Source: Macrostomum lignano (Eukaryota). From it: a DNA stretch of 64,000 nucleotides. Position 1 is the first letter of the stretch. Each line of letters begins with the position of its first letter. Positions 577-55,013 of the stretch are shown one piece after another. The notes below the pieces were generated by a model. That model ran no database searches, had not been told where the DNA came from, and was given only the letters and a program-made list of their open reading frames with translations. Position numbers and translations under genes: made by a program. Location: contig NIVC01001326.1 of NCBI GenBank assembly GCA_002269645.1, forward strand, positions 181,708-245,707, read 5' to 3'.

Positions 577-2668
577 TCAAACTTGAATCATCATCCGAAA
601 CTCTTTCAAGGCCCTGAAGCCTTCTACAAAATACCACACAGCATAAGAAGCGGTTGTTGTTTGGCCGTAGTAGTAGTTACCATTGGGATTCGCATAGCTG
701 CAGCTGCTATATTTATGCCACCAGCCACCGTAGCCGCCCCAATTAACAGAACAGTGCGATGCAGAGTAGCCATCGTTATCAACATCGCGGGTTGAAAACT
801 TCTGACCTCTCGAGAGTTGCAGAGCGTCAAAGACCAAGCTTGATTTCGCTCTGACCATCGATCCGTACGACATCGTGTAGCTGGTGCTGGCGGAGCCAAC
901 AACGAAGTTCGAATATTCGGCGAACCATTCAGTGTTATTCCAAAGAAGAATTTCTACTCGCAACGCTGCAGTTCGAGAACTCGTCAGCCTGTGCATGGTG
1001 TCCAAACCTACAAAGAGTCAAATACACAAAATAACATGAATCAGGCCTAAACTGTTTCCTCGTTTAATAGCTATGCAAAATAAAAGTTACCAATCCAAAA
1101 GTTGATGTCATCACCGAATCCAGCCACATATTCCCGCCAGTATCGTTGAAACTGGCTGGTTCGACAGTTTCGTTGAAGCACGACTAAGAAACTTCTGTCG
1201 TCTCTGGTGACAGTTTTATTACTAAGAGCTTCCAGGTTCGATAAAGCAGCACGAACTGCTTGGCTGTTGACTGACATCCTGTCTTTCATTCTGAAAGCAA
1301 AGCGGCTCTGACTGGTGCGATATTCGCACTCGTCTTTGAGCGAAAACGAGCCGGACCATCGAATGCCCTTCCAGAAGTTGACCGGCTCAGACTGAAGAAT
1401 GGAGCTGAAAAACCAATCTAATTGTACAGTCACCGAATTAAAGTTAAGGCACTTCTAAAAATAACTCTTACATAAGCAAATCACACGATTCCAAAGCCCT
1501 ACAGTAAGCTCTCAGCTCCGCAGTCCGCCGGTCAACAGACAGTCTCAACGCCTCGAACCGCCACTGAGACAGCCTGCTGCTCACGTGGATGCTCGCGTGC
1601 CACAGCTTCATGAACTCCAGCGACTCGACTGACGCAGACCCGATCCGAGACCTCACCGCCGCGATCACGGACTCGTCTTCGATCAGAGCGGGCAGCCTCA
1701 CATAGTGGCTACGAGTGAGAAGTCTCTGAGCAGCTGGAAGCTCGGAGTCGGCACAGCAACGGTTCGATCACAAAGTGGCCTCTCTTGCCTCGTCTCTGGT
1801 GCACGTAGGCAGTGCAGTTGTCCAGCTGAACCACTCTGAACAGCTGGAGATCGGAGCAGGCTGGCAGAGCAGAGCTCCTGGGTCTCTGCAGCGACTCGAT
1901 TGGGAGGAACGGAGCGCGAGCGACGGTGACCGGGAAGGCGCGCTCGAAGGCGGCGCAGCCCTCGCCAGCTCGCATGCTGGCCACGAGACGGATGTTGTCG
2001 AATGGCTCCAAGCGGTCTCTCTCGAGGTTCATCCTGAACGACATTCGAACGATAACTTGAATTTGGCTTTCTACGAGCTAAATAGCATTCACCCTTAACT
2101 GTTATTCCATGCAAAATTATGAAACATACGCGAGGGACGGACACGCGAATTCGGCGCACATCAGCCGCAGGTGTCCAATGAACTCCGTCGGACCCCACAG
2201 AAATGAGGCCTTCGTAAACGCGAGGCTGTTCGAGCTGTTCATCCGAACGCTCGTCACCTCCAGAAACGACACCGACTTTGGCGACAGGTGGCTCAGCATC
2301 GACGCCGCCTCGGTCGCCAGAGTCTCGTCGGTCACGTTGACGGGGAAGCTGAAGTAGAACTCGTTGGTCAGCAGGTCGAAGTGGGCGCCGGGACTGCGCA
2401 GAGCGGCCGGCTCCGTGATGCAGAAGGTCGGCTCGAGCACGAAGCGACCGGCCTTGACGGCGCCCAGACGGTGCACGAAGACGGGACAGCCGCGGATCGA
2501 CAGGCTGGTAACGAAGGACATGGAAGGCAGCGAGCCGTTGCTGCAGGCGAACTCGATGCGTTGGGCCGGAGCTGGCAGCGAGTCGGCCGCGTCCTGCTCC
2601 GACGGGACTGCCGAAGCGCCGAGGCTGCAGAGCAGCAGCAGCTGAAGAAACTCTTGCAAATGACGCAT
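577..2668 (-). CDS. Secreted FReD gene, copy 1 (signal peptide, two 6-Cys repeat domains, fibrinogen C-terminal domain). Exons 2668-2130, 2033-1472, 1404-1091, 1007-577. Exon 2 is frameshifted as written.
   Basis: Signal-like MRHLQEFLQLLLLCSLGASA. FReD motifs QRNC..F.RYWREYVAGFGD..NFWIG|LDTMHRLT, FSTRDVDNDG, GGWW, NPNG and EFRMMIQV. GT-AG introns are phase 2/2/1, matching copies 2 and 3. Two single-base deletions versus copies 2 and 3 at ~1709 and ~1750. Confidence 0.85.
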
Positions 2669-3329
2669 TATGCTCTTCCGAGTGGATAATGAAAAAACCA
2701 GGTGGCAAAGTTAGTTATTAAATTAACAGCATTAAATTGTCTTTCAAACAAGCCCAGTGTGTTGCAGTCAACTGGTTTTGCATCGCGCGACTCTTCTGTG
2801 CTGATGCTATCGGAGTGGCAGTCTGCGGAATTCACCTTTGACTCTGTGCGGTCTGGTAGACAGCATCAGATAACAGCCCGTGTGAGGGACAGAAGTTTGT
2901 TCGAGTTCTCCATAGTAAGTGCAATGATAACGGATCTCGTGACTGGACATTGCACCCATAAAATTTGCACCAAGACAAGTTTGCGATTTAAGCATGCACC
3001 AGAAATATACAGGCAGTTAGTCAAGGTGGTCTGGATTCTAAACAAATCTAGAAAAGCATAGTTTACGAGTAAACAGTTTATGCATAAACATTGTTAAGTT
3101 TACATAGCAGTCATATCTAGCTTTTCTGGTATTTTTCTCTCATGATTCCACAAGAATTAAGCTAATGCATAGGGCAGTAATTTATATATCACTTGGTAAT
3201 TATTGGAGCAGTTTTCAGAATATTTGAGCGAGTGTTTAAAAATACCTTTGATAAGTGAATTTTGATGAGCATACGAGTAAATATTTGCAGGAGGGCTGCA
3301 ATGCAGAGGGCTGAACCCTGGTGCAACGC

Positions 3330-3575
3330 TTTCGGCGACATGGTGTCAAAACCAGCGCTGAGGCAGACACTCGCACACACGCTCACACAGGGTGTACAGC
3401 GGCCCTGACCTTCGAATCGGCAGGCATGTACACTCTCTGCGCCTTGGAGGTTGGCCCTCGTAGGTGTGAATCGCCCGCCTCCCCGCCCCAAATGAATGCG
3501 GCCGCGCATAGAATCGAACAGGCGTCGTAGCGCGAGTCAGACAGGCACGTTTACCGCTGGGCTGCTCTGCACTCT
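3330..3575 (-). mobile_element. tRNA-derived SINE, diverged copy
   Basis: On the minus strand, A-box-like CAGCCCAGCGG (3564-3554) and B-box-like TGTTCGATTCT (3520-3510), 33 nt apart. The body shares GAGGGCCAAC, AGTGTACATGCC and GCCGCTGTACAC..TGTGTGAGCGTGTG with the 20.9 kb copy. Confidence 0.7.
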
Positions 3576-3635
3576 CAATTTCGATCGAAGACTTCTTTAG
3601 GCTTTGTGGCACAATCTGTTGCAATCAGATTCCGC

Positions 3636-3922
3636 AAGAATATACTCAACAACATCGAACAGTCGCGCCATCACAGAAGATTCCGTCTGTGGTTGTCACT
3701 TTTGAGAGTGCAGGTAAAGTCTCTCAATCTTTGCGAGTGACGCAACTTTGCTACGCCACGGCAGACTTTGGTTGAGGAATGAAGTAGGGGGGGGGGCGGT
3801 GTGGGAGGGTTGGACGGATTAAAGCTGCCCCGATCAGTTTTCTCGGATCTCTTATTTCAAAATAGTCCAAGAGACATTGCTCACTGTTGCATGGAGTGGC
3901 GACTTTTCAATGTTGCTGAGTA
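3636..3922. repeat. ~280-bp dispersed repeat, second copy at 8936-9203
   Basis: Shared blocks such as CATCACAGAAGATTCCGTCTGTGGTTG, GTCTCTCAATCTTTGCGAGTGACGCA and GGCGACTTTTCAATGTTGCT occur in the same order and orientation. Confidence 0.85.
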
Positions 3923-4382
3923 TAATTAAATAAGAAAGGATTTAAGAAATGAATACTTGGAAAGGTGGGTCATTTTTTTACTTCGAGCTGCTCTTCTTTT
4001 AAACTGAGTACAACAGACTGCAGCTGCTCACGAAAGTTGCCAGTGTGATGTAACTGACTTTTCTACAAGCACTTAGCATCAGATCACTAACTCGTTCATG
4101 AACCAACGAATAATCAACACGAAGCGAATAATCAGATTTATAAAACTCATACACAGAAGACTAAAAAAGTTCTTTTTCGTAGAAACAGAAGGATCAAGAA
4201 AATGTTTGAAGCAACAAACAAAACTGAGCTATGGGGCTATTTTGCTTGCATTGTCTCCATTAATTATTATTGTTATTAGCGTGCAGGAACACGAGAGCTT
4301 TTATAAATTCAATGTTGGCGCAACGAAGATTGCGTAACCCGAATGTTATTAACATCAATTGCTGTCTAAAAAAACTGACGTT

Positions 4383-6633
4383 TCATATCTGCACCATCAT
4401 TCTAAACTCTTTAGCAGCTTTGTAGCTTTCCTTAAATTGCCAACCGGATATCGTTGTGGCTCTCGAGTCACCGTAGTTATAGACGCCGTTCGGGTTGGTG
4501 TGTCCGCAGGCTGCGTACCACCAGCCGCCGTAGCCGCCCCATTTTGTTGAGCAGTAGTTAGCAGTTGAATGGCCGTCGTTGTCTCTGTCTCGTGTGGAGA
4601 ACTTGGTGCCGTTTGAAGACGCCAGGGCGTCATACACGAGGCTGGACTGCTCCCGAAGCATGCTGCTGTACTTCATTGTGTACAGCCTCGCCGCGTTGCC
4701 AACAGAGAAGCCGGAGTACTCAGCAAACCACTCGGTGTCATTCCATAGCAGCATCTCAACACGCATTCGAACGCTCTGCGGACTGGTGAGCCAATGCAGA
4801 GTTTCCAAACCTGTAACAGATCAACAATAGGTTGCTGCAGTGTAGTACCATGTACTCGTAATGCTGACTGTCTAGTACAAAGAAAGAGCCTTAACTAAGA
4901 GGCTACCATTTTCGAGCCTTCAGAATATCCGAAAAGTATAACAAGTCCATCCTTGTAGTTACCTAATTTAGCTCGTAACTACGGCTACTAATTCTGTGCA
5001 GTAGTAACGGTGTTCATCTATTGTCAAGACGGCAGCCTTACCTATCCAAAAGTTGTGCTCGTCACCAAAGCCAGACACATATTCACTCCAGAAGCGGTTG
5101 AAATTGCTGCTTCTGCAACCACGCTGAAGCACAATAACGAAATGCCGATTGTTTCGCACCACCGTCTTGTTCCTCAGACTATCAACTTTCTGGCCAATTG
5201 CAGTTGACACTTGGCCTTCACCGCCAGACCGTTCCTTCATCCTGAAAACAAACCGAAGCTTTTCGGATCGGAGTTCGCAGTTGTCTTCCAACAAAAATTT
5301 CGCAGTCCACTGGACGCCTTTCCAGAAGTTCACTGGCTCTGATTTAAAAATTGATCTGGAAAGAATGAGAGAGTTTTTTCTGCATCTATTAGAGAGAAAA
5401 AATCCTAAAAAACCTGATTCAGCAGCCAAACATACACTAGCAACTCGCATGACTTTCGCGTATTGCAGTAAGCTCTCAGCTCCGCAGTCCGCCGGTCAAC
5501 AGACAGTCTCAACGCCTCGAACCGCCACTGAGACAGCCTGCTGCTCACGTGGATGCTCGCGTGCCACAGCTTCATGAACTCCAGCGACTCGACTGACGCA
5601 GACCCGATCCGAGACCTCACCGCCGCGATCACGGACTCGTCTTCGATCAGAGCGGGCAGCCTCACATAGTGGCTACCGAGTGAGAAGTCTCTGAGCAGCT
5701 GGAAGCTCGGAGTCGGGCACAGCAACGGTTCGATCACAAAGTGGCCTCTCTTGCCTCGTCTCTGGTGCACGTAGGCAGTGCAGTTGTCCAGCTGAACCAC
5801 TCTGAACAGCTGGAGATCGGAGCAGGCTGGCAGAGCAGAGCTCCTGGGTCTCTGCAGCGACTCGATTGGGAGGAACGGAGCGCGAGCGACGGTGACCGGG
5901 AAGGCGCGCTCGAAGGCGGCGCAGCCCTCGCCAGCTCGCATGCTGGCCACGAGACGGATGTTGTCGAATGGCTCCAAGCGGTCTCTCTCGAGGTTCATCC
6001 TGAACGACATTCGAACGACAACTTGAATTTGGCTTTTTACGAGCTAAATAGCATTTTTTCCCTTAACTAATATTTCACACACAATTATGAAACATACGCG
6101 AGGGACGGACACGCGAATTCGGCGCACATCAGCCGCAGGTGTCCAATGAACTCCGTCGGACCCCACAGAAATGAGGCCTTCGTAAACGCGAGGCTGTTCG
6201 AGCTGTTCATTCGAACGCTCGTCACCTCCAGAAACGACACCGACTTTGGCGACAGGTGGCTCAGCATCGACGCCGCCTCGGTCTCCAGAGTCTCGTCGGT
6301 CACGTTGACGGGGAAGCTGAAGTAGAACTCGTTGGTCAGCAGGTCGAAGTGGGCGCCGGGACTGCGCAGAGCGGCCGGCTCCGTGATGCAGAAGGTCGGC
6401 TCGAGCACGAAGCGACCGGCCTTGACGGCGCCCAGACGGTGCACGAAGACGGGACAGCCGCGGATCGACAGGCTAGTAACGAAGGACATGGAAGGCAGCG
6501 AGCCGTTGCTGCAGGCGAACTCGATGCGTTGGGCCGGAGCTGGCAGCGAGTCGGCCGCGTCCTGCTCCGACGGGACTGCCGAAGCGCCGAGGCTGCAGAG
6601 CAGCAGCAGCTGAAGAAACTCCTGCAGACGCAT
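4383..6633 (-). CDS. Secreted FReD gene, copy 2. Exons 6633-6098, 5999-5436, 5355-5042, 4810-4383.
   Basis: Continuous frame across GT-AG junctions (CTCGC|GTATGT..TTCAG|G; CTAGT|GTATG..CCAG|A; ATAG|GTAAGG..ACAG|G). FReD motifs WSEYVSGFGD, FSTRDRDNDG, GGWWY, NPNG. Confidence 0.9.
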
Positions 6634-7734
6634 TTAGTTTTCTTGCGCAATAATATCTGAATTAGTCTTGATTCAGATAGTGTCGCAGAACAGTGAACTT
6701 AAATTTGTCTGAACGAAACCTTTAATTTACTTTTCATCACTTACCCTCGAAACGATTCTGTTTCTTGCAAAAAGCATCGCTGCTGCAAATTGTGGCCCAA
6801 TCCTGCGGCTGATTGGCACCATCAGATTGGTATTGTAAAATGTAAACAACACGTTTGTTATCGTGTGTAGGCTGTGACTTCAGGGCCCCACAGCTGCAAT
6901 TGCAGCAGGAGGATAAGAGAGTTCTGACAATTACAGAATTTTTGTTCATTTTCGTTTGCCTATCAGCAGATGAAAATATCTCTGCACTCTAATGTCTAAT
7001 TGACGTGCTTTGAGTGCTGTCAGAAGCGCAATATGAAGGCCAACGAACAGGAGAGAAAATTATAAACAGATTAAATCGCTGTTAATACGCTCGTAAGCTT
7101 CTAAGTGCCAAAGTACTTAGTAGGGAGTTTCTGTGACATGTGACACGATGAAAAGACAGGAGATTATCAGCTCCTATGCTTTCGGCTTGTTAGCCTGAGG
7201 CAAGCGTCTGAAGCATGTATGAAGCAAGAACGTGCTTGTCTGGGGTGCAGTCACACGAATTTTTAAGTGCTTCGAAAATATTAGCTTTTTGCATGGCGCC
7301 GAATGGAGCTTTCGCCATGGACGAATTCGGTCGAGAATAATTAGTCCATAAAAATACACTAAAGAGACAGGAACTTGTTTTCTGGCTGGTCTTCGTTAGA
7401 ATTTCAGGAAAAATAGCTTCATAAACTCGTGGGTACGACTCGGTAAAAACGCATTTTTACTTCGTTTGCAATTCAGAAGGAATTCAGTGCTGAAAAACTG
7501 GAAACTTCTCATCTTGCTAAAGCATATCGAAGCGAAATCCTCATGATTTTGCGACTGCAACATCCTGCTTTAGATATCCATGCGTGATGATGCCCACTCT
7601 CTATCTATCCCGGTCTAAGAGTAGCCAATTACGAGCTATAGTCTATGGCCAAACCATCTTTAGCACCAATGACTGGCATGGGTTGGCTCTTGACTTTGGA
7701 TACGCTGTTTTGCATGAGAAGCATGCAGGCATGG

Positions 7735-7945
7735 AGGGAGCCGTACCTAGTCGTCCAGCGAGGCGCTCTTATGTGCCAGCGGCCCAAGCTCGATTCCAAT
7801 TGAAAATCACAACAATTCGGGGTTAAATTTGAATCTCGGCTTGGCTCTGCTCGTGCAATTAACGCCCGAGGGCCATTGAGGGCCAACACCCAAGACAGTG
7901 AAGTGTACATGCTTACGTATCCGCACCTTATGTGCCTGCTCAGGG
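7735..7945 (+). mobile_element. tRNA-derived SINE copy
   Basis: GGCGCTCTTATGTGCCAGCGGCCCAAGCTCGATTCCAA and the downstream body (TTAACGCCC..TTGAGGGCCAAC..CAGTGAAGTGTACATGC) are nearly collinear with 20925-21070. B-box-like AGCTCGATTCC at 7787-7797. Confidence 0.75.
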
Positions 7946-8389
7946 GAGTCGGCGGAACGGGTAGTGATGCCGCTCCCCAGTTGAGTAACAATTTCGCTTG
8001 AAGTACCCCTACCTCTAATAAATAATTCAGGCATAGAGGCTCCAGTTGATTTTTAAGGGTAAAATCTTTTTTCAAATCGTAAGAACAAATATTGTCTCCG
8101 ACGAGTATCTAGTACCTGACGCATGCCCAATTTTCAATGATATAAGTCACGTACATACAGTACTAATAGAAGGCTATGAATATTAAATATTCGACGTGAA
8201 AAAATCATCTATTAATTAGCAAGGTTAAGGGTCATAGGATTAATTTTATTGCTGACAGCAATCATAACGTTATTATAACAAAAAAGTATGAGCGTTTCGG
8301 CACTGTTTCTTAGAAAACATTTCACTCGAGCTTTGTGATCTGAAGTTGAGTGGACAAAGCAATCTTAAGCTTCAATCTTTAGCTTTTAA

Positions 8390-10854
8390 CTATATCTGAA
8401 CCATCATGCGAAACTCCTTCAGAGTTCTATAGCCCTCCTTGAAACTCCAAGTTGAGTAACCGGTGCTTGTTGACTGGGCGAAGTGATAAATCCCGTTCGG
8501 GTTGGCGTGACCGCAGTTGCTGTACCACCATCCACCGTTGCCGCCCCATGAACGTGAGCAATAGTGGCGCGAAGAATAACCATGGTTATCCTTATCCCTA
8601 GCGGAGAAGGGAGAGCCTTTAACCGAGCTGAGCGCATCAAAGACTAAGCTGGACCTCGACGGGATCATCTGCAAGTACCGCATGCGGTAATTGTTGCTGG
8701 CATTGTCAACGGAGAATCCAGAGTACTCGGCGAACCACTCGGTCTCGTTCCAGAGCAGCAGCTCCACCCGCATGAGGGTGCCCTTCCGGCCGGTCAGGCT
8801 GTGAAGAATGTCCAGGCCTGGAATTGGCGCAGATTAAATTCTGCACACTTTAGTCACGGAATTCTGCGGTTTGACCCGAGGTCTGGGACTCTGGTTGCTG
8901 GATTCACACAGCTAGAGCCAACCCACAAAGCGGCATATACTCAGCAACATCGAAAGTCGCCATCACAGAAGATTCCGTCTGTGGTTGCCACTTTTGAGAG
9001 TGCAAGTACAGTCTCTCAATCTTTGCGAGTGACGCAGCTTAGCTACGCCGAGGCAGACTTGAGTTGAGAAATGAAGTGGGGGGAGCGGTGTGCGAGGATT
9101 GGACTGATTAAAGCCACCCCGATCAGTTTTCTCAATTTCAGAATAGTCCAAGAGAAACTGCTCACTGGCATATAGAATGGCGACTTTTCAATGTTGCTAA
9201 GTAAATACACTACCTTCCACCGGACCTAAAACACCTGAAAATCAAAAACCATGCCATCACCTATCCAAAAATTGCTCTCATCGCCAAAGCCAGCCACGTA
9301 TTCCCGCCAGGTGCGCTGAAAATTGCTGGCCCTGCAGCCGCGCTGGTTAATAATGATGAAAGTGCGCCCGTCCCGCAAGACGGTGCGGTCTCGCAGATCC
9401 TGCGCATTCCATCGGCCGTCATTTCGCCGTGTCTTCAGCGCTGGGCCTCCCGGCGGTCGGTCTCGCATGCGCAGTGCGAATCGGCGCTGCTGGGTGCGGA
9501 AATAGCACTGGTCGTCCAGCAAGGAGACTGCGGTCCACTGGATGTTCTTCCAGAAGTTCACCGGCTCAGAGATCAGCACGAGGCTACAATCGGAGTTTGC
9601 TGCTTGACTTCTTAAAATTTAGCTAATCAAAGAACAGTCTAAAAGCAAAGGAGCACTAAAGTTAGACCCACCCAAGTGCATCGCAAGATGATTGAGTACT
9701 GCAGTAAGCTCTCAGCTCCGCAGTCCGCCGGTCAACAGACAGTCTCAACGCCTCGAACCGCCACTGAGACAGCCTGCTGCTCACGTGGATGCTCGCGTGC
9801 CACAGCTTCATGAACTCCAGCGACTCGACTGACGCAGACCCGATCCGAGACCTCACCGCCGCGATCACGGACTCGTCTTCGATCAGAGCGGGCAGCCTCA
9901 CATAGTGGCTACCGAGTGAGAAGTCTCTGAGCAGCTGGAAGCTCGGAGTCGGGCACAGCAATGGTTCGATCACAAAGTGGCCTCTCTTGCCTCGTCTCTG
10001 GTGCACGTAGGCAGTGCAGTTGTCCAGCTGAACCACTCTGAACAGCTGGAGATCGGAGCAGGCTGGCAGAGCAGAGCTCCTGGGTCTCTGCAGCGACTCG
10101 ATTGGGAGGAACGGAGCGCGAGCGACGGTGACCGGGAAGGCGCGCTCGAAGGCGGCGCAGCCCTCTGCAGCTCGCATGCTGGCCACGAGGCGGATGTTGT
10201 GGAACACTTCCGTCTGTCCTTTTGCCAGGTAAAGCCTAAACATTAAGTACAGTACGGTGTTAAACAATCCAAAAAGCATCTACTGAATCACTTTAAAACT
10301 GAAGATCACCACCTGTATATTTACTTTAGAGATTGGCAGACAAGCCCAGAACACACCAGCCGCAGGTGTCCAATGAACTCCGTCGGACCCCACAGAAATG
10401 AGGCCTTCGTGAACGCGAGGCTGTTCGAGCTGTTCATCCGAACGCTCGTCACCTCCAGAAACGACACCGACTTTGGCGACAGGTGGCTCAGCATCGACGC
10501 CGCCTCGGTCGCCAGAGTCTCGTCGGTCACGTTGACGGGGAAGCTGAAGTAGAACTCGTTGGTCAGCAGGTCGAAGTGGGCGCCGGGACTGCGCAGAGCG
10601 GCCGGCTCCGTGATGCAGAAGGTCGGCTCGAGCACGAAGCGACCGGCCTTGACGGCGCCCAGACGGTGCACGAAGACGGGGCAGCCGCGGATCGACAGGC
10701 TGGTAACGAAGGACATGGAAGACAGCGAGCCGTTGCTGCAGGCGAAGATGTCTTCTGTCAGTAGATTGGACACATTCAGAAGCTGTTTGGCTGAGGACCC
10801 TTGGCACAGTCCGACGCTGCACAAAAGCAGCATTAGAAATAATTTGAAGTGCAT
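8390..10854 (-). CDS. Secreted FReD gene, copy 3. Exons 10854-10325, 10235-9672, 9583-9261, 8817-8390.
   Basis: Signal-like MHFKLFLMLLLCSVGLCQG. Same intron positions and phases as copies 1 and 2. FReD motifs WREYVAGFGD, FSARDKDNHG, GGWWY, NPNG. Confidence 0.9.
8936..9203. repeat. ~270-bp dispersed repeat in intron 3 of FReD copy 3 (partner at 3636-3922)
   Basis: Direct visual alignment to 3636-3922. Confidence 0.85.
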
Positions 10855-11604: not shown

Positions 11605-13700
<2,096 letters not shown>

Positions 13701-14458
13701 CAATGTTAATGGCAAGGAACTTATCGCTGTACTAATAGGTAAAACTACCAGTAAAATTTTCATGGACAATGTATGTATTTCTACTACTAGTAGGTTGGTA
13801 GATACTCTAGTTAGTAGATAAATAAAAATAAAAATGCAAAATACACATCGATTAAACTAGGTGTAGTAGCTTAACTAAATTTCTAAAATCTATAGAACAG
13901 CTGTCAAAGCTAATCTTATGAGCTAACAATAATCTGAATGATTCAGATTATACTGATACTTTCTTAGGCCTAGTAATGATTGACAAATTCAACTTCAAAT
14001 TGAAAGTTAAAATATCTAGTTCTTCCTTAAACATGCTAAAAAATAGTTTTTTTATTAATTGATGCAAATTGTTTTCAAAAAAGAACTTAAATAAAACAAT
14101 AATCTAGATATTAAATTGAATCTATATCAGGCAGAAATTATAAAGAAATTTCTAAGACTATTATTGGCAATATACATGTCTAAAACTTGGCTAAGAGGCT
14201 GTTAACCAAGGTTGACCCCTCAAAAAATTAAAAAGCAAGAAGAACTATGAAATGGCCAAATGGGATGAAAAAGAAATAAGAAAAAAAAATAAGAAAAAAA
14301 TAATCAAAAGTTGAAAAGTAGAACATTAAAGCTAAGTTACACTTTTTGTTAAAAAAAACTAAGCTGCATAGCCAGTTTAAATTATAGAGATAAACAAATA
14401 TATGATTGGCAAAATAATATTTTATTCTTTCTACAATACTTTACTAAAATGAATTTTT

Positions 14459-16633: not shown

Positions 16634-19600
16634 ATGTCTCTTTTCAAAGCCAGAGACTGGTGGCGGTGCCAATGCGGCTCTGGTGAAGAGTTTGACAATG
16701 GTTGCTTAGCAACTGGTCGCCTTCTGCAAGACCTGCAGCAATTCGTTGCAATCGGCAGTCACTCTGGCATTCTCCGAATTTTCAAGCCGGTCAAAGGAGA
16801 TGCCACGGGTACGGAGAGCACCTGTCTGGAAAAGGATCTTCGAGGCCCAATCCTGGCCGTTGCCATTGGCAACCTGATCTCAGAGGGCCGGGGCCTGGCC
16901 GTGCTGCACGACCGCAAGCTGGCAGTGTACACCCTGAGCTGCACACAGGGCCATTCCAACGGGGGCTCAGCCTATTCTCTGCGACTTGCCTACGAGCACA
17001 GCCTGAAGAAGAGCGGCTACAATCTCTGCTGCGGCCCGTTCGGAAAAGTGGAACGACGCGACTTCATCGCCGTGCAGCATCTTGACGCCGCGGTGTCGGT
17101 CTTCGAGCAAGAGAGCTTCTCTTTTATTCGCTACCTGCCCAACGCTGTGCTGCCCGGTCCGATGGCCTACCTGCCCGCTAGCGACATTTTTGTGACTGGC
17201 AACTCTGCCCGGGTAGTTGAGGCATACAAGTACAACTCGCTGGCCGTAGCCACTGACGCTCAGGATGACCCGAAGGTAAAGCGAGAAATGACCAGCTCTC
17301 TATCCATTGTCAGTATCTGTACTGCTACACTGCTCTGCATGAACTGCATTACCCTGGTCATATGAAAGCTGAGAGCCATTCTAAGACGAACTGGAGGTTG
17401 GTTGTCGGGACCAATTAAGCTTTACACAAGGACCACTAGCAGTATATCAGGACGCTACACTCAAAGATCGTGTAATTTAGCATGCACAGCATGTTACTAA
17501 TAAGCATTGAAATGAAACTATGCCTAAAATAATGGCTCCAGAGTACCTGACTGTGCTAATCTTTAGTAATCCAAATCAAATGGAATAATTGATTTTGTAA
17601 TGAAAAAATGATGTTTTCCTATCTTCATAGTCTTAGTCTATTTTTTACGGAAATCGGCCACCAAGAAAATTACACGATCCTTTAAGTGTAGCGTCCTGAT
17701 ATACTGCTAGTGGTCCTTGGCTTCACAATGCAATGGTTCTAGAAAGGCCCGCATATGCACCATCAGTCGTCCTACTCACCCCAACTCGCCAGTCCCGTCG
17801 GGTGAAGCACGAATGGGTGCACAACTCCGGCGAGCTCGTGCTGGACATCCGCGCCTGGCCGCGCCAGGAGGCCGTGCTGGTGCTGAACTACCGCTCGGTG
17901 CTGTGCCTCTCCGAGGCGGCCGGGCAGCCAAATTGGGCGCTGCGATTTGAAGTGCCACCGGCGGCAATCCTGCCGCTGACGTCCAACTGGCTGGTGGCCA
18001 GCAGCACCGGCCAGCTGCTGGTGCTGCACGAGAACGAGCTGCTCTGGGGAGCTCAGCACAGCGCGACCCCCGTGCAGCTGCAGCTGGTGACGGCCGGCCA
18101 GACCGAGGGACTCATCGTTGCGCTCACCGAGGACGGCAGGTGCGACGCCCTGTACCTGGGCACCGACCCCAGCCTGCCGATCATGAATCCGAGCTCGGCG
18201 TTCCGCGACCTGGACGTGACCAGGCTGGACGGCGAGCTGCGGGCGATTCAAGGCCGAATCCGGCAGGCCACCAGCGGCGCCTCCCTGCCAGCCGTCAAGG
18301 AGACCGCCGACCTGCAGCTGAACTTCCACGTGGCCGCTTCGTCGCGTCCAATTGGTGCAGCTCCAGAAGTTTCAGTGACAGTTCAGGTAGATTTGCATTG
18401 CAGCAACCTCATAAATAACAATATGTTGTTAGTAGGTATTAAAGATGAGAGCAGCGTGAGAGGGCGCGCCTAACGATTTGAAAGCAGACATAGGCTGCAT
18501 GCAGCATGCCCGCATCTCATCATCGGTAGGGTGGCACTTGCAGCGTCAGCAGCTGTGGGCAGTATGACTCGGCGCAGTTGAAGTGACCTCCCAGATGGAA
18601 TTGTCAATGGCACAATAGGTTACCTGGACGGACCAGGCGTTGTGCAGCAGGGCAAAAATGATGAAGAATAACAACGAGTAAAACGGCCCTTTTCAGTCCA
18701 CATAATCAACTTTAATTAAACACAAAATTGCTTTATAAAAACAAATTTACAGGGCCGCACAAAGTCGCACATTCAAGAGGTGCAGCTGTGCCTGCAGCCG
18801 CCGGCGCCGTTGCAGGTGTCGCAGCCTCGCCTCACATTCTCCTTCGTGGACTCGTCGCATCCGTTGGAGGCCGAGGTGCAGTTCTCCGTCGGGCCCAACA
18901 GCACCGCCTGCGCCCCAGCCAGCCTGCAGGCCACGGTGGTGGCCACCTTCACCAGCACGGCTGGCTCGCCAAAGTGCGTCCAGTCCGTCATTCACCTGCC
19001 GTTCGCGGCGTGCGTCCAGCCGGTGCTGCCTGAGAAGCAGGCGCGCTGCAAGCTGACGCTGGAATTCAACAAGCCGCCGGTGCCGCTTGATCAGCTGTTC
19101 CCCGAGCTGCAGCTGCCGGAGCTCGAGCCTGGTGGACAGGTAAATAATCCTAACGGCAAGGTTTGACCAAATGTGTTGCAATTGCCAGCTTGTACTTAAT
19201 GATACAATGCTGTATGCCATTGGTTTTATGGACAACTAAAAGTAAAAACGGACGCTACATGCAAACATGCATAAGCATTAATGCAAACTACATCAGTTGA
19301 ACTTCTAGATCTCAGAAAATTAGACATCAGAGTAAATTTTGAGTATATCGTTCCTCAGCTGTACTTATCCATAATAGGCATGGCTTTTATTGTCTCTGTG
19401 AACCACTTAAATCATTCCTTCTATTCATTGTTGAATTTGTGAGCTCAGTGAACATTGACTTCCATACAGTAACGATTTAAGTTATCAACGTGTTTGCCTT
19501 TTTCTGTGTCTAAATCCACTACTGCCAAATTGGAATTCTCAACTTTTCTATCATGTTGCAGCTTCATTTACCTCTCTACTATCAGTAGTGCAAATTAGTA

Positions 19601-21792
19601 CCGCTTTTGACCAATCCCACTGCACACAGGCTGTGGCTTTTCGCTACCTGCCAGACAGCGCCACAGTGACTCTGGTGGCCTCCCAGACGGCCAGCAAGTA
19701 TCGCCTGCAGGGCGACAGTCTCGACCAGCTGACGCTGCCTCTGCGCGAGCTGCGTCAACGCCTGCGCGGTCACCATGGCGACGCGTTGCGCTGCAACCTG
19801 GCCTGCCCGCTGCCGCTGCCGGACTACTGCGAACTGGTGGACTGGCACTGGGAGTGCCGCCAGCGGGTGGCCAGCCTGGACGCTCAGCTGGAACAGAAGG
19901 CCGCTCAGTTCAGGTGCTGATGAACTCCGCTGACTTGTTGTTGATTATGGGCTGCACAATCGGCCAATGTAGAATGCACAGACAACTAAATTACATGTAG
20001 AATAATGCTACCCTTGCAAGTGCCTTAGAGAGATAGGAGATCTAAACTGATTTGGAAAAGACATTTTTACACAGCCCCTGAGTCAAATGGTTTCGCCATA
20101 AACAAAAATTTCTAGCCCTAGAAAAAGTACACTAAAAAGACAGGAGCACCACAAATTTCGCCACAACCTTGCTTGCTTGCCGGTCTCTGGTAGCATTTAG
20201 GAAAAAACTTCTTGATAAGCTTGTGAGAGCATCTCGGAAAAAACACAAATTTGCTTGTTTTGCCATTCGGAAGATTCCAGAAAGAGAGAAATATTGCTAT
20301 TTTCGTGTTTAAAAAACTGAAAACTTTCTGTCTCGCCAATGTGCAATTTGGCGAAATTTTTTGAAGGCATTCTCGTCTGTCATTTCAACAATGATGAAGT
20401 CTCCATCGTAGTTGCCCCCCGCCCCATTTGCTCACCCATTCGCAGGGCGGTGCAGAAGCGGCTGCTGGCCAAATTCAAGGACAAAACCGCCGGGCCGCTG
20501 CAGAGCCTCGACCTGCTGCTGGAAAGCGCCGGCGAGCAGGCCATGTCGCTTGCCGAAGAAGCCGAAGCCGCCAGCCAGGCGTTGCGAGCCTCCGGCCAGC
20601 GAGTCTGCGCCGCCGGGGCCGCCCTGGCCGAGTTGCTGCAGCTGGCCGGCCCGGCCGAACAGCTGGGCAGCGTTCTGAGCGACCAGCTGGATGATTTTCC
20701 CGAGTGTGGCCTCGCTGAACAATTGGACGCTGCTCTGACTCACCTACTGCGCACCGGGCTCAGCCGAAGCGGCGCAAAGGTAATTTCTATCGGAATTCTT
20801 TCTTCATCAGTGATGACGTAACACTTTTAAGGCCAAGTTTACTTTCAAAGTGACCGCAGTCGATAACAAACGCCGAGACATCCAATTCCGTACAAGGACG
20901 CGCCGTAGCCCAGTGGTCCGGCGCGGCGCTCTGATGTGCCAGCGGCCCAGGCTCGATTCCAAGTGCAGTCGCATTAATTTTGGGCTAAATTGGAATCTCG
21001 GATTGGCTCTGCTCATGAAATTAACGCCCTTGAGGGCCAACCCTCCCAGGGCACAGTGAAGTGTACATGCCTAACGATAAATAAAGTCTAACGCCGCTGT
21101 ACACTCCTGTGTGAGCGTGTGTCTATGCGTATGACTGCGTCCGTATCCGCGCGCTTATGTTTCTCTCGCCGGTTGTGTGACAAAGTCGCTTAAAGTGATG
21201 CGCCAGAGTACACAAAACCCCCTGTTTAGGCTTTCACGTCCTCATTGAAGCTTTCACACCCTCATTGAAGCTTTCACACCCCGGCTCCCCGTAGGACGCG
21301 ATGGTCAGCGGCGCCGGTCGGCTGGAGCCAGCCAAGGACGTCGCTAAGCTGAAGAAGCACGTCCAGATGCTGTGCGAAAAGCTGGCCAGAGGCGCCACAA
21401 TTGCGCCGTTGCCGGCGCCTGGCGCCGCCGCTGCCGCCTCGGCAGCCGCAGCAGCTGCCGGTTCGGTCGCTCCCACCTCTGCCCTGCCGGTGATCCGAGA
21501 GCCGGACAGCAGGGGCGGCATCGGCGGCGCCCCATCCGGTGAGGACTTCCTGAACGGCTCGTTGAACGCCAGCCAGCAGTTCATGAGCCCGCGAGCCGCC
21601 GACTCGAGCAAGAAGCAACGGCACAAGAAGAAGAAGAAGCAGAAGAAGCACCATCGCGACAGGGAGGACGGCGAGGAGGAAGAGGAGGCGGACATGTTCG
21701 GCTCGGCGCGCTCAAAGCCGGCGCCGAGAGAGCTGGAGAAGGCATCGGCGCTGCTGGCGCCTGCCGCTGAGTCGGCCGGGTTTTATGACTGA
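16634..21792 (+). CDS. BBS9: Bardet-Biedl syndrome 9 (PTHB1). Exons 16634-17275, 17793-18386, 18753-19139, 19630-19913, 20446-20779, 21295-21792.
   Basis: MSLFKARDWW start, EEFDNGCL, LAVLHDRKLAVY, LYLGTDPS, ASKYRLQG, QF|RAVQKRLLAKFKDK and KLKKHVQMLCEKL. All five introns are GT-AG and keep the frame. Confidence 0.96.
17427..17719. mobile_element. 293-bp MITE with ~52-bp TIRs starting CAAGG (P-superfamily-like) in BBS9 intron 1
   Basis: CAAGGACCACTAGCAGTATATCAGGACGCTACACT..GATCGTGTAATTT at 17427 is the near-perfect reverse complement of 17667-17719. Flanks GCTTTACA / GCTTCACA form an 8-bp TSD with one mismatch. Confidence 0.85.
20897..21170 (+). mobile_element. tRNA-derived SINE, best-preserved copy, in BBS9 intron 5
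   Basis: A-box TAGCCCAGTGG (20906-20916) and B-box GGCTCGATTCC (20950-20960), 33 nt apart, followed by a body shared with the other copies. Confidence 0.8.
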
Positions 21793-24750: not shown

Positions 24751-27700
24751 TTAACACCACATCGGCCACCAGAGAAACGGAGAGAACAGCAGAGCTCCGG
24801 CCGCGAATCCCAGAGCCGCGTCGCCGGCGCAGCACGACCGACAGCCGTAGCAGCTGTGCCGATGGCAGAACGGCGGCCGGCCATCCTCGTAGACGACCAC
24901 AGTATTGCCGTCCGGGTGATAGATTACCCTTGCCGGCACGTTGCAGCCGTTCTCAACGTAGATTACCCGCTGCGACTGGTACTGTCCCTGATTAGCCGGC
25001 TGAGGCCCGTAGCCGTACTGACTGTACGGAGGCGGCGGAGGCGGCTGCTGGTACTGCCTGTACTGATGGTACTGCTGCGGCAGCGGCGCCGATGCCGGTC
25101 TGGCCTGACGCGCCTCCTCAAGCGTCAGCAGCCAGGCGTCCGCATCGTCCGGATCGTCGGCGCAGAAGCGCCAAGTTTTGTCCGGCGTGGAGAAAGCGAA
25201 TACAGCGGCGTAGGGCCGACCGTCCGGCGGGCTGACCCGGCAGGCCTCGCCGCGCATTGTGCCCTGCACCTCCACAGGGATGGAGAGGGTCTCTTCGGCG
25301 ATCAGCTTGTCTGGCGATTCGAAGTACTTTAAGTCGCCGTTGGCGTAGATTACCGTCCAGCATTTCTTCCAACGGTGAAGGATGTCGCCTGCCAATGAAC
25401 GTAAAGCAGCGCTTTAAATGTTGCTTACAGCTGTCTACCGACTCCGACTCTCCTCAGTAGATCACTGCTGTCTACCGACTCTCCTCAGTAGATCACTGCT
25501 GTCTACCGACTCTCCTCAGTAGATTACAGCTGTCTACCGACTCCCCTCAGTAGATTACAGCTGTCTACCGACTCCGAGTCTCCTCAGTAGATCACTGCTG
25601 TCTACCGACTCCCCTCAGTAGATTACAGCTGTCTACCGACTCTCCTCAGTAGATCACTGCTGTCTACCGACTCTCCTCAGTAGATCACTGCTGTCTACCG
25701 ACTCTCCTCAGTAGATTACAGCTGTCTACCGACTCTCCTCAGTAGATCACTGCTGTCTACCGACTCTCCTCAGTAGATTACAGCTGTCTACCGACTCTCC
25801 TCAGTAGATCACTGCTGTCTACCGACTCTCCTCAGTAGATCACTGCTGTCTACCGACTCCCCTCAGTAGATCACTGCTGTCTACCGACTCTCCTCAGTAG
25901 ATCACTGCTGTCTACCGACTCCCCTCAGTAGATCACTGCTGTCTACCGACTCTCCTCAGTAGATCACTGCTGTCTACCGACTCTCCTCAGTAGATCACTG
26001 CTGTCTACCGACTCCCCTCAGTAGATCACTGCTGTCTACCGACTCTCCTCAGTAGATCACTGCTGTCTACCGACTCTCCTCAGTAGATCACTGCTGTCTA
26101 CCGACTCTCCTCAGTAGATCACTGCTGTCTACCGACTCTCCTCAGTAGATCACTGCTGTCTACCGACTCTCCTCAGTAGATCACTGCTGTCTACCGACTC
26201 TCCTCAGTAGATCACTGCTGTCTACCGACTCTCCTCAGTAGATCACTGCTGTCTACCGACTCTCCTCAGTAGATCACTGCTGTCTACCGACTCCCCTCAG
26301 TAGATCACTGCTGTCTACCGACTCCCCTCAGTAGATCACTGCTGTCTACCGACTCTCCTCAGTAGATCACTGCTGTCTACCGACTCTCCTCAGTAGATTA
26401 CAGCTGTCTACCGACTCTCCTCAGTAGATCACTGCTGTCTACCGACTCTCCTCAGTAGATTACAGCTGTCTACCGACTCTCCTCAGTAGATCACTGCTGT
26501 CTACCGACTCTCCTCAGTAGATCACTGCTGTCTACCGACTATCCTCAGTAGATCACTGCTGTCTACCGACTCTCCTCAGTAGATCACTGCTGTCTACCGA
26601 CTCTCCTCAGTAGATCACTGCTGTCTACCGACTCTCCTCAGTAGATCACTGCTGTCTACCGACTCTCCTCAGTAGATCACTGCTGTCTACCGACTCTCCT
26701 CAGTAGATCACTGCTGTCTACCGACTCCCCTCAGTAGATCACTGCTGTCTACCGACTCCCCTCAGTAGATCACTGCTGTCTACCGACTCTCCTCAGTAGA
26801 TCACTGCTGTCTACCGACTCTCCTCAGTAGATTACAGCTGTCTACCGACTCTCCTCAGTAGATCACTGCTGTCTACCGACTCTCCTCAGTAGATTACAGC
26901 TGTCTACCGACTCTCCTCAGTAGATCACTGCTGTCTACCGACTCTCCTCAGTAGATCACTGCTGTCTACCGACTCTCCTCAGTAGATCACTGCTGTCTAC
27001 CGACTCTCCTCAGTAGATCACTGCTGTCTACCGACTCTCCTCAGTAGATCACTGCTGTCTACCGACTATCCTCAGTAGATCACTGCTGTCTACCGACTCT
27101 CCTCAGTAGATCACTGCTGTCTACCGACTCTCCTCAGTAGATTACAGCTGTCTACCGACTCTCCTCAGTAGATCACTGCTGTCTACCGACTATCCTCAGT
27201 AGATCACTGCTGTCTACCGACTCCCCTCAGTAGATCACTGCTGTCTACCGACTCTCCTCAGTAGATCACTGCTGTCTACCGACTCCCCTCAGTAGATCAC
27301 TGCTGTCTACCGACTCCCCTCAGTAGATCACTGCTGTCTACCGACTCCCCTCAGTAGATCACTGCTGTCTACCGACTCTCCTCAGTAGATCACTGCTGTC
27401 TACCGACTCTCCTCAGTAGATCACTGCTGTCTACCGACTCTCCTCAGTAGATCACTGCCGTCTACCGACTCCCCTCAGTAGATCACTGCTGTCTACCGAC
27501 TCCCCTCAGTAGATCACATCACTGCTGTCTACCGACTCTCCTCAGTAGATCACTGCTGTCTACCGACTCTCCTCAGTAGATCACTGCTGTCTACCGACTC
27601 TCCTCAGTAGATCACTGCCGTCTACCGACTCCCCTCAGTAGATCACTGCTGTCTACCGACTCCCCTCAGTAGATCACTGCTGTCTACCGACTCTCCTCAG

Positions 27701-28283
27701 TAGATCACTGCTGTCTACCGACTCTCCTCAGTAGATCACTGCTGTCTACCGACTCCCCTCAGTAGATCACTGCTGTCTACCGACTCCCCTCAGTAGATCA
27801 CTGCTGTCTACCGACTCTCCTCAGTAGATCACTGCTGTCTACCGACTCCCCTCAGTAGATCACTGCTGTCTACCGACTCTCCTCAGTAGATCACTGCTGT
27901 CTACCGACTCCTTCAGGCTTCAGCTTCAAAATTTTACCATATCTATAGTCTATAGTTCAAACCAATACAAGCCAACAAACAAACAAAAATTTAGCATTCT
28001 GTATCAGATTAAACATGAGTCAGGCCCGAGGGATTTATGAAAATAACTCCCGAAAAAGGCATGTGTAATCTCGTATAAACCATAGACATTAAGACTTTGC
28101 GGTATATTATTGAATATTACCAAATAAAATCCCGGAGAACGCAAATATTGTCACGGAAAGTCTTTATTTCTATGGATTATAAATGAAAAAAGCAAGCGTA
28201 TTCGTAGTTGACTTACTCTGTCTGAGCAGCCAGCCAGCTTTCATGATTTGAAAGCACTGACTTGTTGCACCTCCGTGGGCCAT
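24751..28283 (-). CDS. PLEKHB2: PH-domain protein, PLEKHB/evectin-like. Exons 28283-28217 and 25388-24751.
   Basis: The spliced product MKAGWLLRQ|SDILHRWKKCWTVIYANGDLKYFES...PPDG...FCADDPDDADAW matches the evectin PH domain. It continues into a PPPPPY-rich linker and a C-terminal hydrophobic anchor (AALGFAAGALLFSPFLWWP). Phase-1 intron GTAAGT..GGCAG. The symbol reflects family similarity only. Confidence 0.88.
25431..27910. repeat. 31-bp minisatellite, about 80 copies, in the PLEKHB intron
   Basis: Unit CTGTCTACCGACTCTCCTCAGTAGATCACTG, with CCCC/CTCC and GATTACAG/GATCACTG variants. Confidence 0.97.
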
Positions 28284-29120: not shown

Positions 29121-30611
29121 GAATGCTCCCTGTGGACTAACAACGAAGCTTATAAGGAACTAGGATGCTTCTTAAAAAGTGGATGAATTTTTCAATAATG
29201 GCTACTTTTTTATCTCAACAGTAGTATACTCGTGACCTGCTCATTGTTCATGTTTTGGCTGCAGTCTGATTTGCAAACCGCGCAGCTGTGAGCGACTGTA
29301 GGCTGATTCATATGCATTGGCTGAACAGCCAGCTCTTCATCCATTCAGCTGAGTAGGCCCGTGGCCAATAGGGACCCCTATGGCCAGCCTCCTGGTGGCG
29401 CATAAATCCGTCGGCCGCTCCGCGGGGAAGATTCGCTGCCATCCCGAACCAAGAAATAACCGACTTCATACTTGCGCGCGCTTTGACATTCGTCTCCTTA
29501 TTTGCGTTGAATTCCCTCGAGGACTTCCTGCATCGCCGAGCGACACGATTGGAAAATTACCGGTCAAGAAAGTTTGGTAAGCAAAGCAAATTGACCGCGT
29601 CGCAGTGAGGGTTCCGGAGATTAAGATCGCGCTGGATCCGGACCCGGCTCCGAAGCGCTGTTAGTTTACTCAAAGCTTCGTGCTCACTTTCGACTCTTGG
29701 ATTTCTGGGGGGGGGGAAGGAGCATTCCTCCAAGTCATGTCAGAATGTCATCTGACTAATGAGTTTTCTGCTGCTTTAACTTGGGCGGAACTCTTCCCGA
29801 CCTCCAGATTTTGCTTGAGTCCCGAAGAAATACTCTCAGTTTTCCAGTTAACTGCTTGAGACTAATTATTCCAATTATAATTTTTTGGCAGGTAAAATCA
29901 GCCCATTGAGACTACACGATGTCCAAGACTCTCTGCATCCAGCTCTGCATTGTGATTGGTAAGCGCAGCTCGATTTGCAACGAAAATTCCTATCACATTG
30001 TATTGCTAAAAAGTGACCAGTAACCTGACAGATGCCGCGTCTCTTCCAGAAGAAAATGCGATTAGTGTTTTTGTTTATATTTAGGAAAGAGGGATTGTCA
30101 ACCCCTCGGGGTTTCGGCAATCAGTCCTGCTCCAAATCTGTGGGAATACTTTCTTAGATTAAAGATGGAAAAGATGTCGAAGCTCCATCGCTCCCTGCAG
30201 CCTGTACTGCGCAGCGATAGCACGAGCAACATTTTAAGAGTGATGTAGAACTGACATGCAGACTCTCCATGAATAACTAACTTAGTTGAGTTGTTGCACT
30301 GGCTCCTCTGATTGATGACTATTAAAAAGTTTACACTGGGTACGTGGAGTTTTCCAGTCTCACTTTGAATTCTCACATGACACAAAATCGAACTTTCTCC
30401 CTACATGCATAGGTCTCAGTCGTTTAGATAGGACGTACTTGAACATTCTGCAGGAGGCTGTGGATGCTGCCTTTAACTTCTGAGCACATCCCGCACGTCC
30501 GTGAGCACGCACACGCACGAATGTTGTTACAATTTACCTTGATTTTCTCATCCTCAGGCCAAGTGCGTAAACTTTGCGCCTTGGGGTCCTCCTTGAGCCT
30601 AAATCACGCCA

Positions 30612-39129: not shown

Positions 39130-39722
39130 CTCGTGAACTCACTCATGAACTCACTCATGAACTCACCCATGAACTCACTCATGAACTCACCCATGAACTC
39201 ACTCATGAACTCACCCATGAACTCACTCATGAACTCACTCATGAACTCACTCATGAACTCACTCATGAACTCACTCATGAACTCACTCATGAACTCACTC
39301 ATGAACTCACTCATGAACTCACTCATGAACTCACCCATGAACTCACTCATGAACTCACTCATGAACTCACTCATGAACTCACTCATGAACTCACTCATGA
39401 ACTCACTCATGAACTCACTCATGAACTCACTCATGAACTCACTCATAAACTCACTCATGAACTCACCCATGAACTCACTCATGAACTCACCCATGAACTC
39501 ACTCATAAACTCACTCATGAACTCACTCATGAACTCACTCATGAACTCACTCATGAACTCACTCATGAACTCTCTCATAAACTCACTCATGAACTCACTC
39601 ATAAACTCACTCATAAACTCACACTCATGAACTCACTCATAAACTCACTCATGAACTCACTCATAAACTCACTCATGAACTCACTCATGAACTCACGAAC
39701 TCATGAACTCACTCATGAACTC
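39130..39722. repeat. 12-bp minisatellite (TCATGAACTCAC)n
   Basis: Directly visible. Confidence 0.97.

Positions 39723-47449: not shown

Positions 47450-55013
<7,564 letters not shown>

Follow-up and report, generated by a model that had tools for sequence, protein, structure and literature searches.

Near-identical N-terminal cores in three tandem FReD genes of the flatworm Macrostomum lignano: a probable case of short-tract interlocus gene conversion

Partial concerted evolution of tandem paralogues is an already well-known mechanism, with interlocus gene conversion acting in the globin, opsin, RH, MHC/KIR and sea-urchin Sp185/333 clusters. Among lectins, the FREP/VIgL proteins (FREP, CREP and GREP) of the snail Biomphalaria glabrata are secreted and consist of one or two tandem non-lectin domains at the N terminus and a fibrinogen-related domain (FReD) at the C terminus, and gene conversion has been reported for the snail FREPs (PMC7588048). 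The same architecture is predicted here for three tandem FReD genes of the flatworm Macrostomum lignano, termed c1, c2 and c3, which occupy positions 577–10854 of a 64,000-nucleotide stretch of contig NIVC01001326.1 (GCA_002269645.1, positions 181,708 to 245,707; hereafter the window). The 5′ halves of the three genes contain near-identical cores flanked by strongly diverged sequence. The genes are probably old tandem FReD duplicates whose 5′ halves have been repeatedly overwritten by short-tract interlocus gene conversion. Little is known about the recognition molecules of free-living flatworms, and in the literature no report was found that connects M. lignano with fibrinogen-related genes or describes the c1–c3 family in Macrostomum.

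Gene structures and near-identical cores

All three FReD genes read from the minus strand and consist of four exons; their introns are of the GT-AG type, with phases that are conserved. Gene c1 (577–2668) comprises exons 2668–2130, 2033–1472, 1404–1091 and 1007–577, gene c2 (4383–6633) exons 6633–6098, 5999–5436, 5355–5042 and 4810–4383, and gene c3 (8390–10854) exons 10854–10325, 10235–9672, 9583–9261 and 8817–8390. These gene structures are firm and agree with an initial annotation of the window, which had described three same-strand paralogues of one exon structure. Both c2 and c3 are intact and encode proteins of 613 and 614 amino acids, respectively. The c1 gene encodes a signal peptide, two orphan domains and the FReD, and its reading frame is broken in the window. 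Exons 1 and 2 each contribute one copy of the ~125-residue orphan domain; a C-x5-C helix and a linker of 55–70 residues come after each copy. Both the signal peptide and intron 1 of c3 are its own, unlike those of c1 and c2. A tblastn search of the 64-kb window revealed no family member beyond c1, c2 and c3. The lectin family that had been envisaged thus amounts to three genes in each copy of the locus and is no large repertoire.

Self-BLAST reveals two blocks of near-identity common to all three genes. Core 1 (c1 2157–2551, c2 6125–6519 and c3 10352–10746, minus strand) lies in exon 1, extends from FACSNGSL to GHLRL and contains orphan domain A. Its c1 and c3 copies are 99.0% identical, with 4 mismatches in 395 positions and a synonymous divergence (dS) of 0.02. 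Core 2 (c1 1499–2002, c2 5466–5968 and c3 9699–10204, minus strand) lies in exon 2, extends from NIRLVASM to ELRAYC and contains the linker and orphan domain B. Here the c1 and c3 copies are 98.4% identical over a block of ~505 bp, and those of c1 and c2 display 0 substitutions and differ by two 1-bp gaps only. In the c1–c2 pair the similarity forms one longer stretch (c1 1502–2669 against c2 5466–6634), 98.2% identical over 1172 bp, which runs from about the start codon through the whole of intron 1 to a point within exon 2. Outside the cores the best similarity between the genes is ~68–80% and is confined to short stretches. The core limits in c2 and c3 were defined by self-BLAST and alignment and, for core 1, also by the sliding window.

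The borders of the cores are abrupt. In a 50-nt sliding window identity drops from 0.96–1.00 inside the cores to 0.2–0.7 outside within one window step, and this occurs at every border. The 3′ border coincides in all pairs and falls on the codon for the Cys of ELRAYC (TGT in c1, TGC in c2 and c3), ~29 nt before the exon 2 donor and at c2 coordinate 5465/5466. The 3′ ends of cores 1 and 2 lie at near-homologous positions of the two domain units, past the last β-strand (...LRL and ...LRAYC) and ahead of the C-terminal helix. In the cores Nei-Gojobori estimates of dS are 0.008–0.04 and those of nonsynonymous divergence (dN) 0–0.007. The longest identical runs of the three gene pairs (645, 260 and 269 nt) exceed the corresponding shuffle maxima of 91, 65 and 53 nt, such lengths being reached in 0 of 2000 shuffles in which all sites were used. 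A Sawyer-type polymorphic-site test gave no information for c2–c3 and c1–c3, as the cores are monomorphic among the three genes.

The exon 2 tail, exons 3–4 and an island in c3 display saturated proportions of synonymous differences (pS, 0.69–0.95) and dN values of 0.27–0.55 by the same method. Amino-acid identity of the diverged parts is 51–60%, and introns 2–3 and the flanks are not alignable among the paralogues. In c1 the diverged 3′ part spans 577–1498 (minus strand) and comprises the exon 2 tail, intron 2, exon 3, intron 3 and exon 4 with the FReD (pS 0.69–0.86, dN 0.27–0.46); its equivalents, also on the minus strand, are 4383–5465 in c2 and 8390–9698 in c3. The three FReD heads are 52–60% identical, with saturated dS and dN of 0.33–0.46, and their sequence divergence looks old. 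The island of c3 (10205–10351, minus strand) is a 147-bp unconverted segment between the two cores that takes in 27 nt at the end of exon 1, the whole of intron 1 and 31 nt at the start of exon 2, with the peptide VCSGLVCQSLK/LYLAKGQTEVFH. The island can hardly be aligned to c1 and c2, its sliding-window identity to them being 40–66% (pS 0.95, dN 0.53). Its counterpart (c1 2003–2156 and c2 5969–6124, minus strand) is common to c1 and c2, the intron 1 inside it being ~10% diverged. The genes are therefore a mosaic of sequence ages, in which c3 carries two separate tracts flanking the island and the c1–c2 tract has different 5′ limits.

These data confirm that the cores differ by few substitutions, silent sites included (98.4–99% identity), that identity stops at a shared point of exon 2 in all pairs, and that introns 2–3, exon 3 and the FReD exon are heavily diverged, all of which had been noted by eye. 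The sliding-window identity and the dS per exon suggested at that time reveal an abrupt step at every core border and a dS far from uniform, 0.008–0.04 in the cores against a pS of 0.69–0.95 elsewhere. The signal peptide and intron 1 proper to c3 are likewise confirmed; the unshared segment is not limited to intron 1, however, and takes in the adjoining ends of exons 1 and 2.

Subgenome copies and the origin of the cores

The same three-gene cluster is present on two other contigs of GCA_002269645.1, NIVC01002029.1 (locus L001) and NIVC01000142.1 (locus L002), which are 97–99% identical to the window and display the same cores and borders. L001 and L002 show 0 differences over more than 8 kb spanning c2 and c1 and are ~1–1.5% apart in c3, where L001 is 99.3% identical to the window. 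This mosaic is due either to a recombinant variant of a subgenome or to a scaffold that is chimeric at its end. Counted as independent, c1 and c2 are thus each available in two versions and c3 in three. M. lignano, whose polyploidy is recent, has the subgenome variants S, L1 and L2, with a single-nucleotide polymorphism divergence of 1.9–2.4%; all three are represented in GCA_002269645.1, in which 36% of the assembly length lies in chimeric scaffolds (PMC10733133). The divergence of 1–3% between the locus copies is consistent with the published values, and the window, L001 and L002 are most simply interpreted as subgenome variants.

Within the cores, paralogues differ at 0–14 sites per 390–500 bp, a number comparable to that by which the window and L versions of one gene differ. 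The c1 and c2 cores differ at 3 sites in the window and at 17 in the L copy. In addition, 10 substitutions, 5 of which alter an amino acid, are clustered in a 96-bp patch of exon 1 in the c1 gene of the L copy; neither the c1 of the window nor any other copy has this patch. At alignment columns 813, 1259 and 1286 variants are private to one locus copy and common to its paralogues, and paralogues must therefore have exchanged sequence after the subgenome split. On this sequence evidence, interlocus gene conversion can be said to have gone on after the subgenomes separated.

Intron 1 of the c1–c2 tract has a different history from the exons around it, with 10 mismatches in 96 sites compared with 3 in 1050 flanking exon sites (Fisher p = 2.5e-9). 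Most of the intron differences are common to the window and the L copy, and those of the exons are copy-specific. The simplest reading is a more frequent exchange of the cores, which may be refreshed oftener because they are swapped among all three genes, the island region being exchanged between c1 and c2 only since c3 is too diverged there. A polishing bias from RNA-seq reads may be an alternative cause of the greater exon uniformity. Conversion templated by complementary DNA is disfavoured as an explanation, because the exon ends of c3 beside intron 1 are also unconverted.

The data are best explained by an old tandem duplication that would have given rise to three genes for secreted FReD lectins, followed by short-tract interlocus (ectopic) gene conversion repeatedly overwriting their 5′ half. 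Tracts would measure ~0.4–1.2 kb overall, those between c1 and c2 beginning near the start codon and stopping 29 nt short of the end of exon 2 and those among all three genes covering two blocks of ~395 and ~505 bp. The flanks would already have been too diverged to pair, so that tracts would end there and leave borders that are both sharp and coincident. Conversion would have continued past the separation of the M. lignano subgenomes. The three lectins that result would share a virtually identical N-terminal scaffold and would differ in their promoters and FReD heads and, for c3, in signal peptide and linker as well. Gene conversion had been put forward in the initial annotation as the cause of the near-identical cores, and it is retained here on the strength of the age mosaic, the 0 of 2000 shuffles and the variants shared within locus copies. 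Furthermore, GC content at third codon positions (GC3) is 0.78–0.88 in converted coding sequence and 0.20–0.74 elsewhere, the island region displaying 0.83 in c1 and c2 compared with 0.52 in c3. This pattern is compatible with GC-biased gene conversion.

A number of points weigh against this interpretation. Intron 1 inside the c1–c2 tract is AT-rich (GC 0.33), which is a misfit to simple GC-biased conversion. All the DNA compared comes from long-read assemblies of a single inbred line, and 36% of the compared assembly lies in chimeric scaffolds (PMC10733133). The Mlig_3_7 assembly was built from PacBio reads with Canu and polished by Pilon with Illumina and RNA-seq reads (PMC5730564). Cross-mapped reads could partly inflate both the counts of residual differences and the excess of exon over intron 1 identity. 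The identity of L001 and L002 over c2–c1 leaves two independent versions only of those genes, and sites private to a locus copy and common to its paralogues are few (3–5). Finally, the timing data taken alone cannot separate sustained homogenisation from one or a few copying events near the genome duplication.

The last of these points opens the way to the best-surviving rival, in which the 5′ module of one gene replaced those of its neighbours in one or very few events near the genome duplication, by non-allelic recombination or one long patchy conversion, with no sustained homogenisation and no selective meaning. The core divergence between paralogues (0.3–2%) approximates the subgenome divergence, as such a scenario would have it, and only three genes are involved. 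Similarly, a second pair of paralogues in the family, P0006/P0011 (L003 10049–13227 compared with L004 9231–11773), displays no step pattern and only a 5′-to-3′ gradient of identity, from 94% in domain A and 86% in domain B to 76–79% in the FReD exons. We nevertheless consider this scenario unlikely. The limits of the c1–c2 tract are unlike those of c3, the c1–c2 differences in intron 1 are older than those in the exons, and the similarity of c1 and c2 itself differs between the window (3 sites) and the L copy (17). The exon 1 patch in the c1 of the L copy and the locus-copy-private variants require at least some exchange after the split, and the raised GC3 of the converted parts suggests a longer history than a few events would provide.

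Far less probable is an artefact of assembly or polishing, whereby truly diverged cores were rendered identical by cross-mapped short reads or collapsed long reads. The use of Illumina and RNA-seq reads in the Pilon polishing of Mlig_3_7 (PMC5730564), the presence of three near-identical subgenomes with many chimeric scaffolds, the single-base indels within the cores and the greater uniformity of exons over intron 1, as expected from RNA-seq polishing, all make it conceivable. However, sequences that are ~55% identical cannot be polished into 99% identity, and three separately assembled locus copies agree in both blocks and borders. Within exons the patch of 10 substitutions persists, as does a difference at column 522 that is specific to one gene and found in every c2 copy, and the cores show no reduction in window-to-L divergence (0.9–1.5%) relative to the variable parts (1.0–2.5%). 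The leftover homopolymer indels in the cores point to under-polishing, not over-polishing, and P0002, a protein recorded only in UniRef, has the same core sequence. The core pattern is thus taken as real, the uncertainty residing in the exact residual counts, the exon-over-intron excess and the c1 frameshifts.

Conversion, not constraint, accounts for the uniformity of the cores because silent sites are identical and the module evolves fast elsewhere in the family. Between c2 and c3 the N-terminal module is 90% and the FReD 57% identical. In other family members (P0006, P0009 and P0014) the N-terminal module is 26–38% and the FReD part 32–45% identical, and the unconverted pieces of the module in c3 have a dN of ~0.5, no lower than that of the FReD. 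By these comparisons the N-terminal module appears to be the faster-evolving half by default, changing family-wide at least as fast as the FReD. The proposal of a constant module kept uniform by conversion therefore holds in its second part, and its premise of functional constraint is weakened by the same figures. Extreme purifying selection on the core nucleotides without exchange, imposed for example by an overlapping RNA element or an antisense gene, would suit the sharp borders and the near-homologous 3′ ends of both cores past the ...LRL/...LRAYC strand, but is scarcely credible when core dS is 20–100x below that of the rest of the gene, the c1–c2 tract contains an intron at 90% identity, the module evolves fast in other members and conservation alone cannot yield locus-copy-private variants common to paralogues.

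The broken frame of c1 is due to two 1-bp deletions in exon 2 (1712–1752, minus strand), where CCC is reduced to CC near 1751 and GG to G near 1712. Both are absent from c2, from c3 and from the c1 of L001 and L002, where the gene is intact. The deletions are probably assembly errors. A true c1 pseudogene is less likely, because the two homopolymer deletions are the sole differences between c1 and c2 over 500 bp and other copies have different single-base gaps. Such gaps number four in the c3 of L001 and one, in exon 4, in the c1 of L002, which suggests that long-read errors remained where the mapping of short reads is ambiguous. Public gene models of the cluster are chimeric (L002 9086–15097; L001 1731–11286), with P0004 joining the N-terminal half of c2 to the FReD of c1 and the model for P0001 extending ~9.5 kb across the cluster. 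Transcript mapping was probably misled by the near-identical cores. Near-identical blocks in a three-subgenome assembly thus mislead gene prediction and read mapping, which matters for the quantification of expression.

The orphan domain, the FReD heads and the surrounding window

The orphan domain is the most original element of the finding. When 1.84 billion representative proteins were searched exhaustively with HMMER, 13 relatives were retrieved, nearly all from M. lignano and a few from metagenome or read-archive contigs. In Macrostomum proteins the domain is found in one or two copies before a FReD and in six copies before a C-type lectin domain, the latter arrangement being that of P0005, P0007, P0019 and P0020, which lie outside the window; proteins of this type measure ~1300–1460 residues. 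The domain architectures suggest that it is a carrier for two types of lectin head. The P0006 gene is without an intron between its two domain units, and in the P0006 and P0011 proteins identity drops directly past the homologous ...LRLLC position.

AlphaFold2, run on a 26-sequence alignment of single units, yields a confident α/β model of the domain (predicted local distance difference test, pLDDT, 94; predicted TM score, pTM, 0.82), and the full c2 protein modelled without an alignment reaches a pLDDT of only 35. Foldseek found no match to this fold in the PDB (best E 0.05, TM ≤ 0.29) and a profile search of PDB sequences returned nothing. In Pfam, c2 and c3 match nothing besides Fibrinogen_C, with no Ig-family match at E ≤ 1. 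With no match in Pfam, in PDB sequences or among PDB folds, the domain is therefore undescribed and lineage-restricted. The absence of Ig-family matches at that threshold and the confident model without an Ig-fold match sustain the original view that the N-terminal module is not of the immunoglobulin superfamily (IgSF). In the Foldseek viral structure set one marginal and uninformative match was obtained, to an uncharacterised protein of Medusavirus stheno (E 0.01, TMq 0.58), which is the only neighbour above TMq 0.5 of the c2 model m02ce5ec3a602 (residues ~235–366).

A bolder interpretation, which we hold to be doubtful, is that the orphan domain represents a new fold and a macrostomid common stalk for a FReD head or, after six repeats, a C-type lectin head, conversion being favoured for co-assembly or a shared partner and leading to combinatorial recognition. 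It is similarly speculative that the uniform scaffold itself may be selected, for instance through a shared partner or mixed oligomers.

The FReD assignment is secure. Pfam Fibrinogen_C (PF00147) matches residues 439–611 of c2 (E 2.4e-30) and 436–612 of c3 (E 8.1e-31), well above the gathering score, so that the description of the locus as tandem FReD genes is upheld at E ~1e-30. The domain is encoded by exons 3–4 and covers profile positions 39/43–218 of 221, the first ~40 positions (A subdomain) being unmatched. The best PDB relatives of the part encoded by exons 3–4 are tenascin-R, ANGPTL2 and ficolin-1 (E 1e-19 to 3e-20), with whose B and P subdomains it aligns. The Cys pair of the P-domain disulfide is retained. 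At the Ca2+ site the motif D-x-D-N-D reads DVDND in c1 and DRDND in c2 and is altered to DKDNH in c3. The His of the acetyl pocket, which in acetyl-binding FReDs comes directly after the second P-domain Cys, is shifted by one position, and Gly (c2 and c3) or Ser (c1) takes its place in the alignment. These altered pocket and Ca2+ residues mean that no ligand class can be deduced. From their sequences the proteins are predicted to be secreted carbohydrate-binding lectins, and the different FReD heads are expected to bind different ligands. A role of c1–c3 in immunity would be speculative, and so would the effector or oligomerisation function that the initial annotation had proposed for the N-terminal module.

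A dispersed repeat is located in the c1–c2 spacer (3640–3922) and has a second copy, 85% identical by self-BLAST, in intron 3 of c3 (8935–9203); its copies stand apart from the conversion tracts and are unrelated to them. Other repeat pairs are 7740–7915 with 20902–21073 and, inverted, 3375–3459 with 21032–21122, the dispersed copies being 80–85% identical. Upstream of c3 lies a rhomboid-like open reading frame (13242–13769, minus strand), called Rhomboid in the matching part of L002. Open reading frames starting MSLFKARDWW at 16634–20821 (plus strand) presumably resemble the ciliary protein BBS9/PTHB1. Beyond c1, L001 contains the gene of a large WD40 protein, and the corresponding gene call of L002 has only faint matches to NACHT/AAA_16. 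The remainder of the window is rich in micro- and minisatellites (12246–13243, 25444–27910, 30610–31820, 39125–39723, 41369–42593, 50239–50854 and others), with arrays that include (TCTA)n over 1 kb, a 31-bp unit x79, a 12-bp unit x102 and a 21-bp unit x60. The window contains no tRNA genes.

Comparison with known systems

In this compact natural case, conversion has probably made uniform the domain that would otherwise evolve fastest in a lectin family, and old divergence persists in the heads, in the promoters and in one linker. The cluster also brings to light an undescribed, confidently modelled domain that is paired with two kinds of lectin head. Transgenesis and RNA interference are established in M. 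lignano, and the cluster is therefore directly testable.

As in the globin, opsin, RH, MHC/KIR and Sp185/333 clusters, the tracts are near-identical down to silent sites, measure from a few hundred bp to ~1 kb, have sharp borders against old flanks and are accompanied by haplotype variants common to paralogues. The mechanism is the same as in those clusters; the host gene family and the undescribed domain pair that is homogenised are new. With ficolins, tachylectin-5 and the angiopoietin-like/tenascin FReD proteins, c1–c3 share the B and P subdomains of the FReD and the P-domain disulfide. In contrast to ficolins, which possess a collagen-like Gly-X-Y stalk, the translated proteins contain no Gly-X-Y repeats, and in contrast to this group of FReD proteins as a whole they have no evident coiled-coil stalk and leave the A subdomain positions of the profile unmatched. 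By sequence, c1–c3 are best classed as members of the FReD superfamily, and neither as strict FREPs, which are defined by an IgSF module, nor as ficolins.

The closest functional analogue, as judged by domain organisation, appears to be the molluscan FREP/CREP set. Snail CREPs place the FREP-type N-terminal module on C-type lectin heads, and the orphan domain is similarly found on FReD or C-type lectin heads. In contrast, the N-terminal module of snail FREPs is IgSF, and that of c1–c3 has neither a Pfam nor a PDB fold match. The polarity of conservation is also reversed, the snail fibrinogen domain (FBG) being more conserved than the IgSF domains (median 67% versus 63% and 50%; PMC7588048) and the FReD of c1–c3 being the diverged part. 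Conversion at the M. lignano locus, compared with the snail FREPs, would constitute a germline homogenisation. If the bolder interpretation of the orphan domain as a macrostomid stalk is true, that stalk would represent a non-IgSF counterpart of the molluscan FREP/CREP system.

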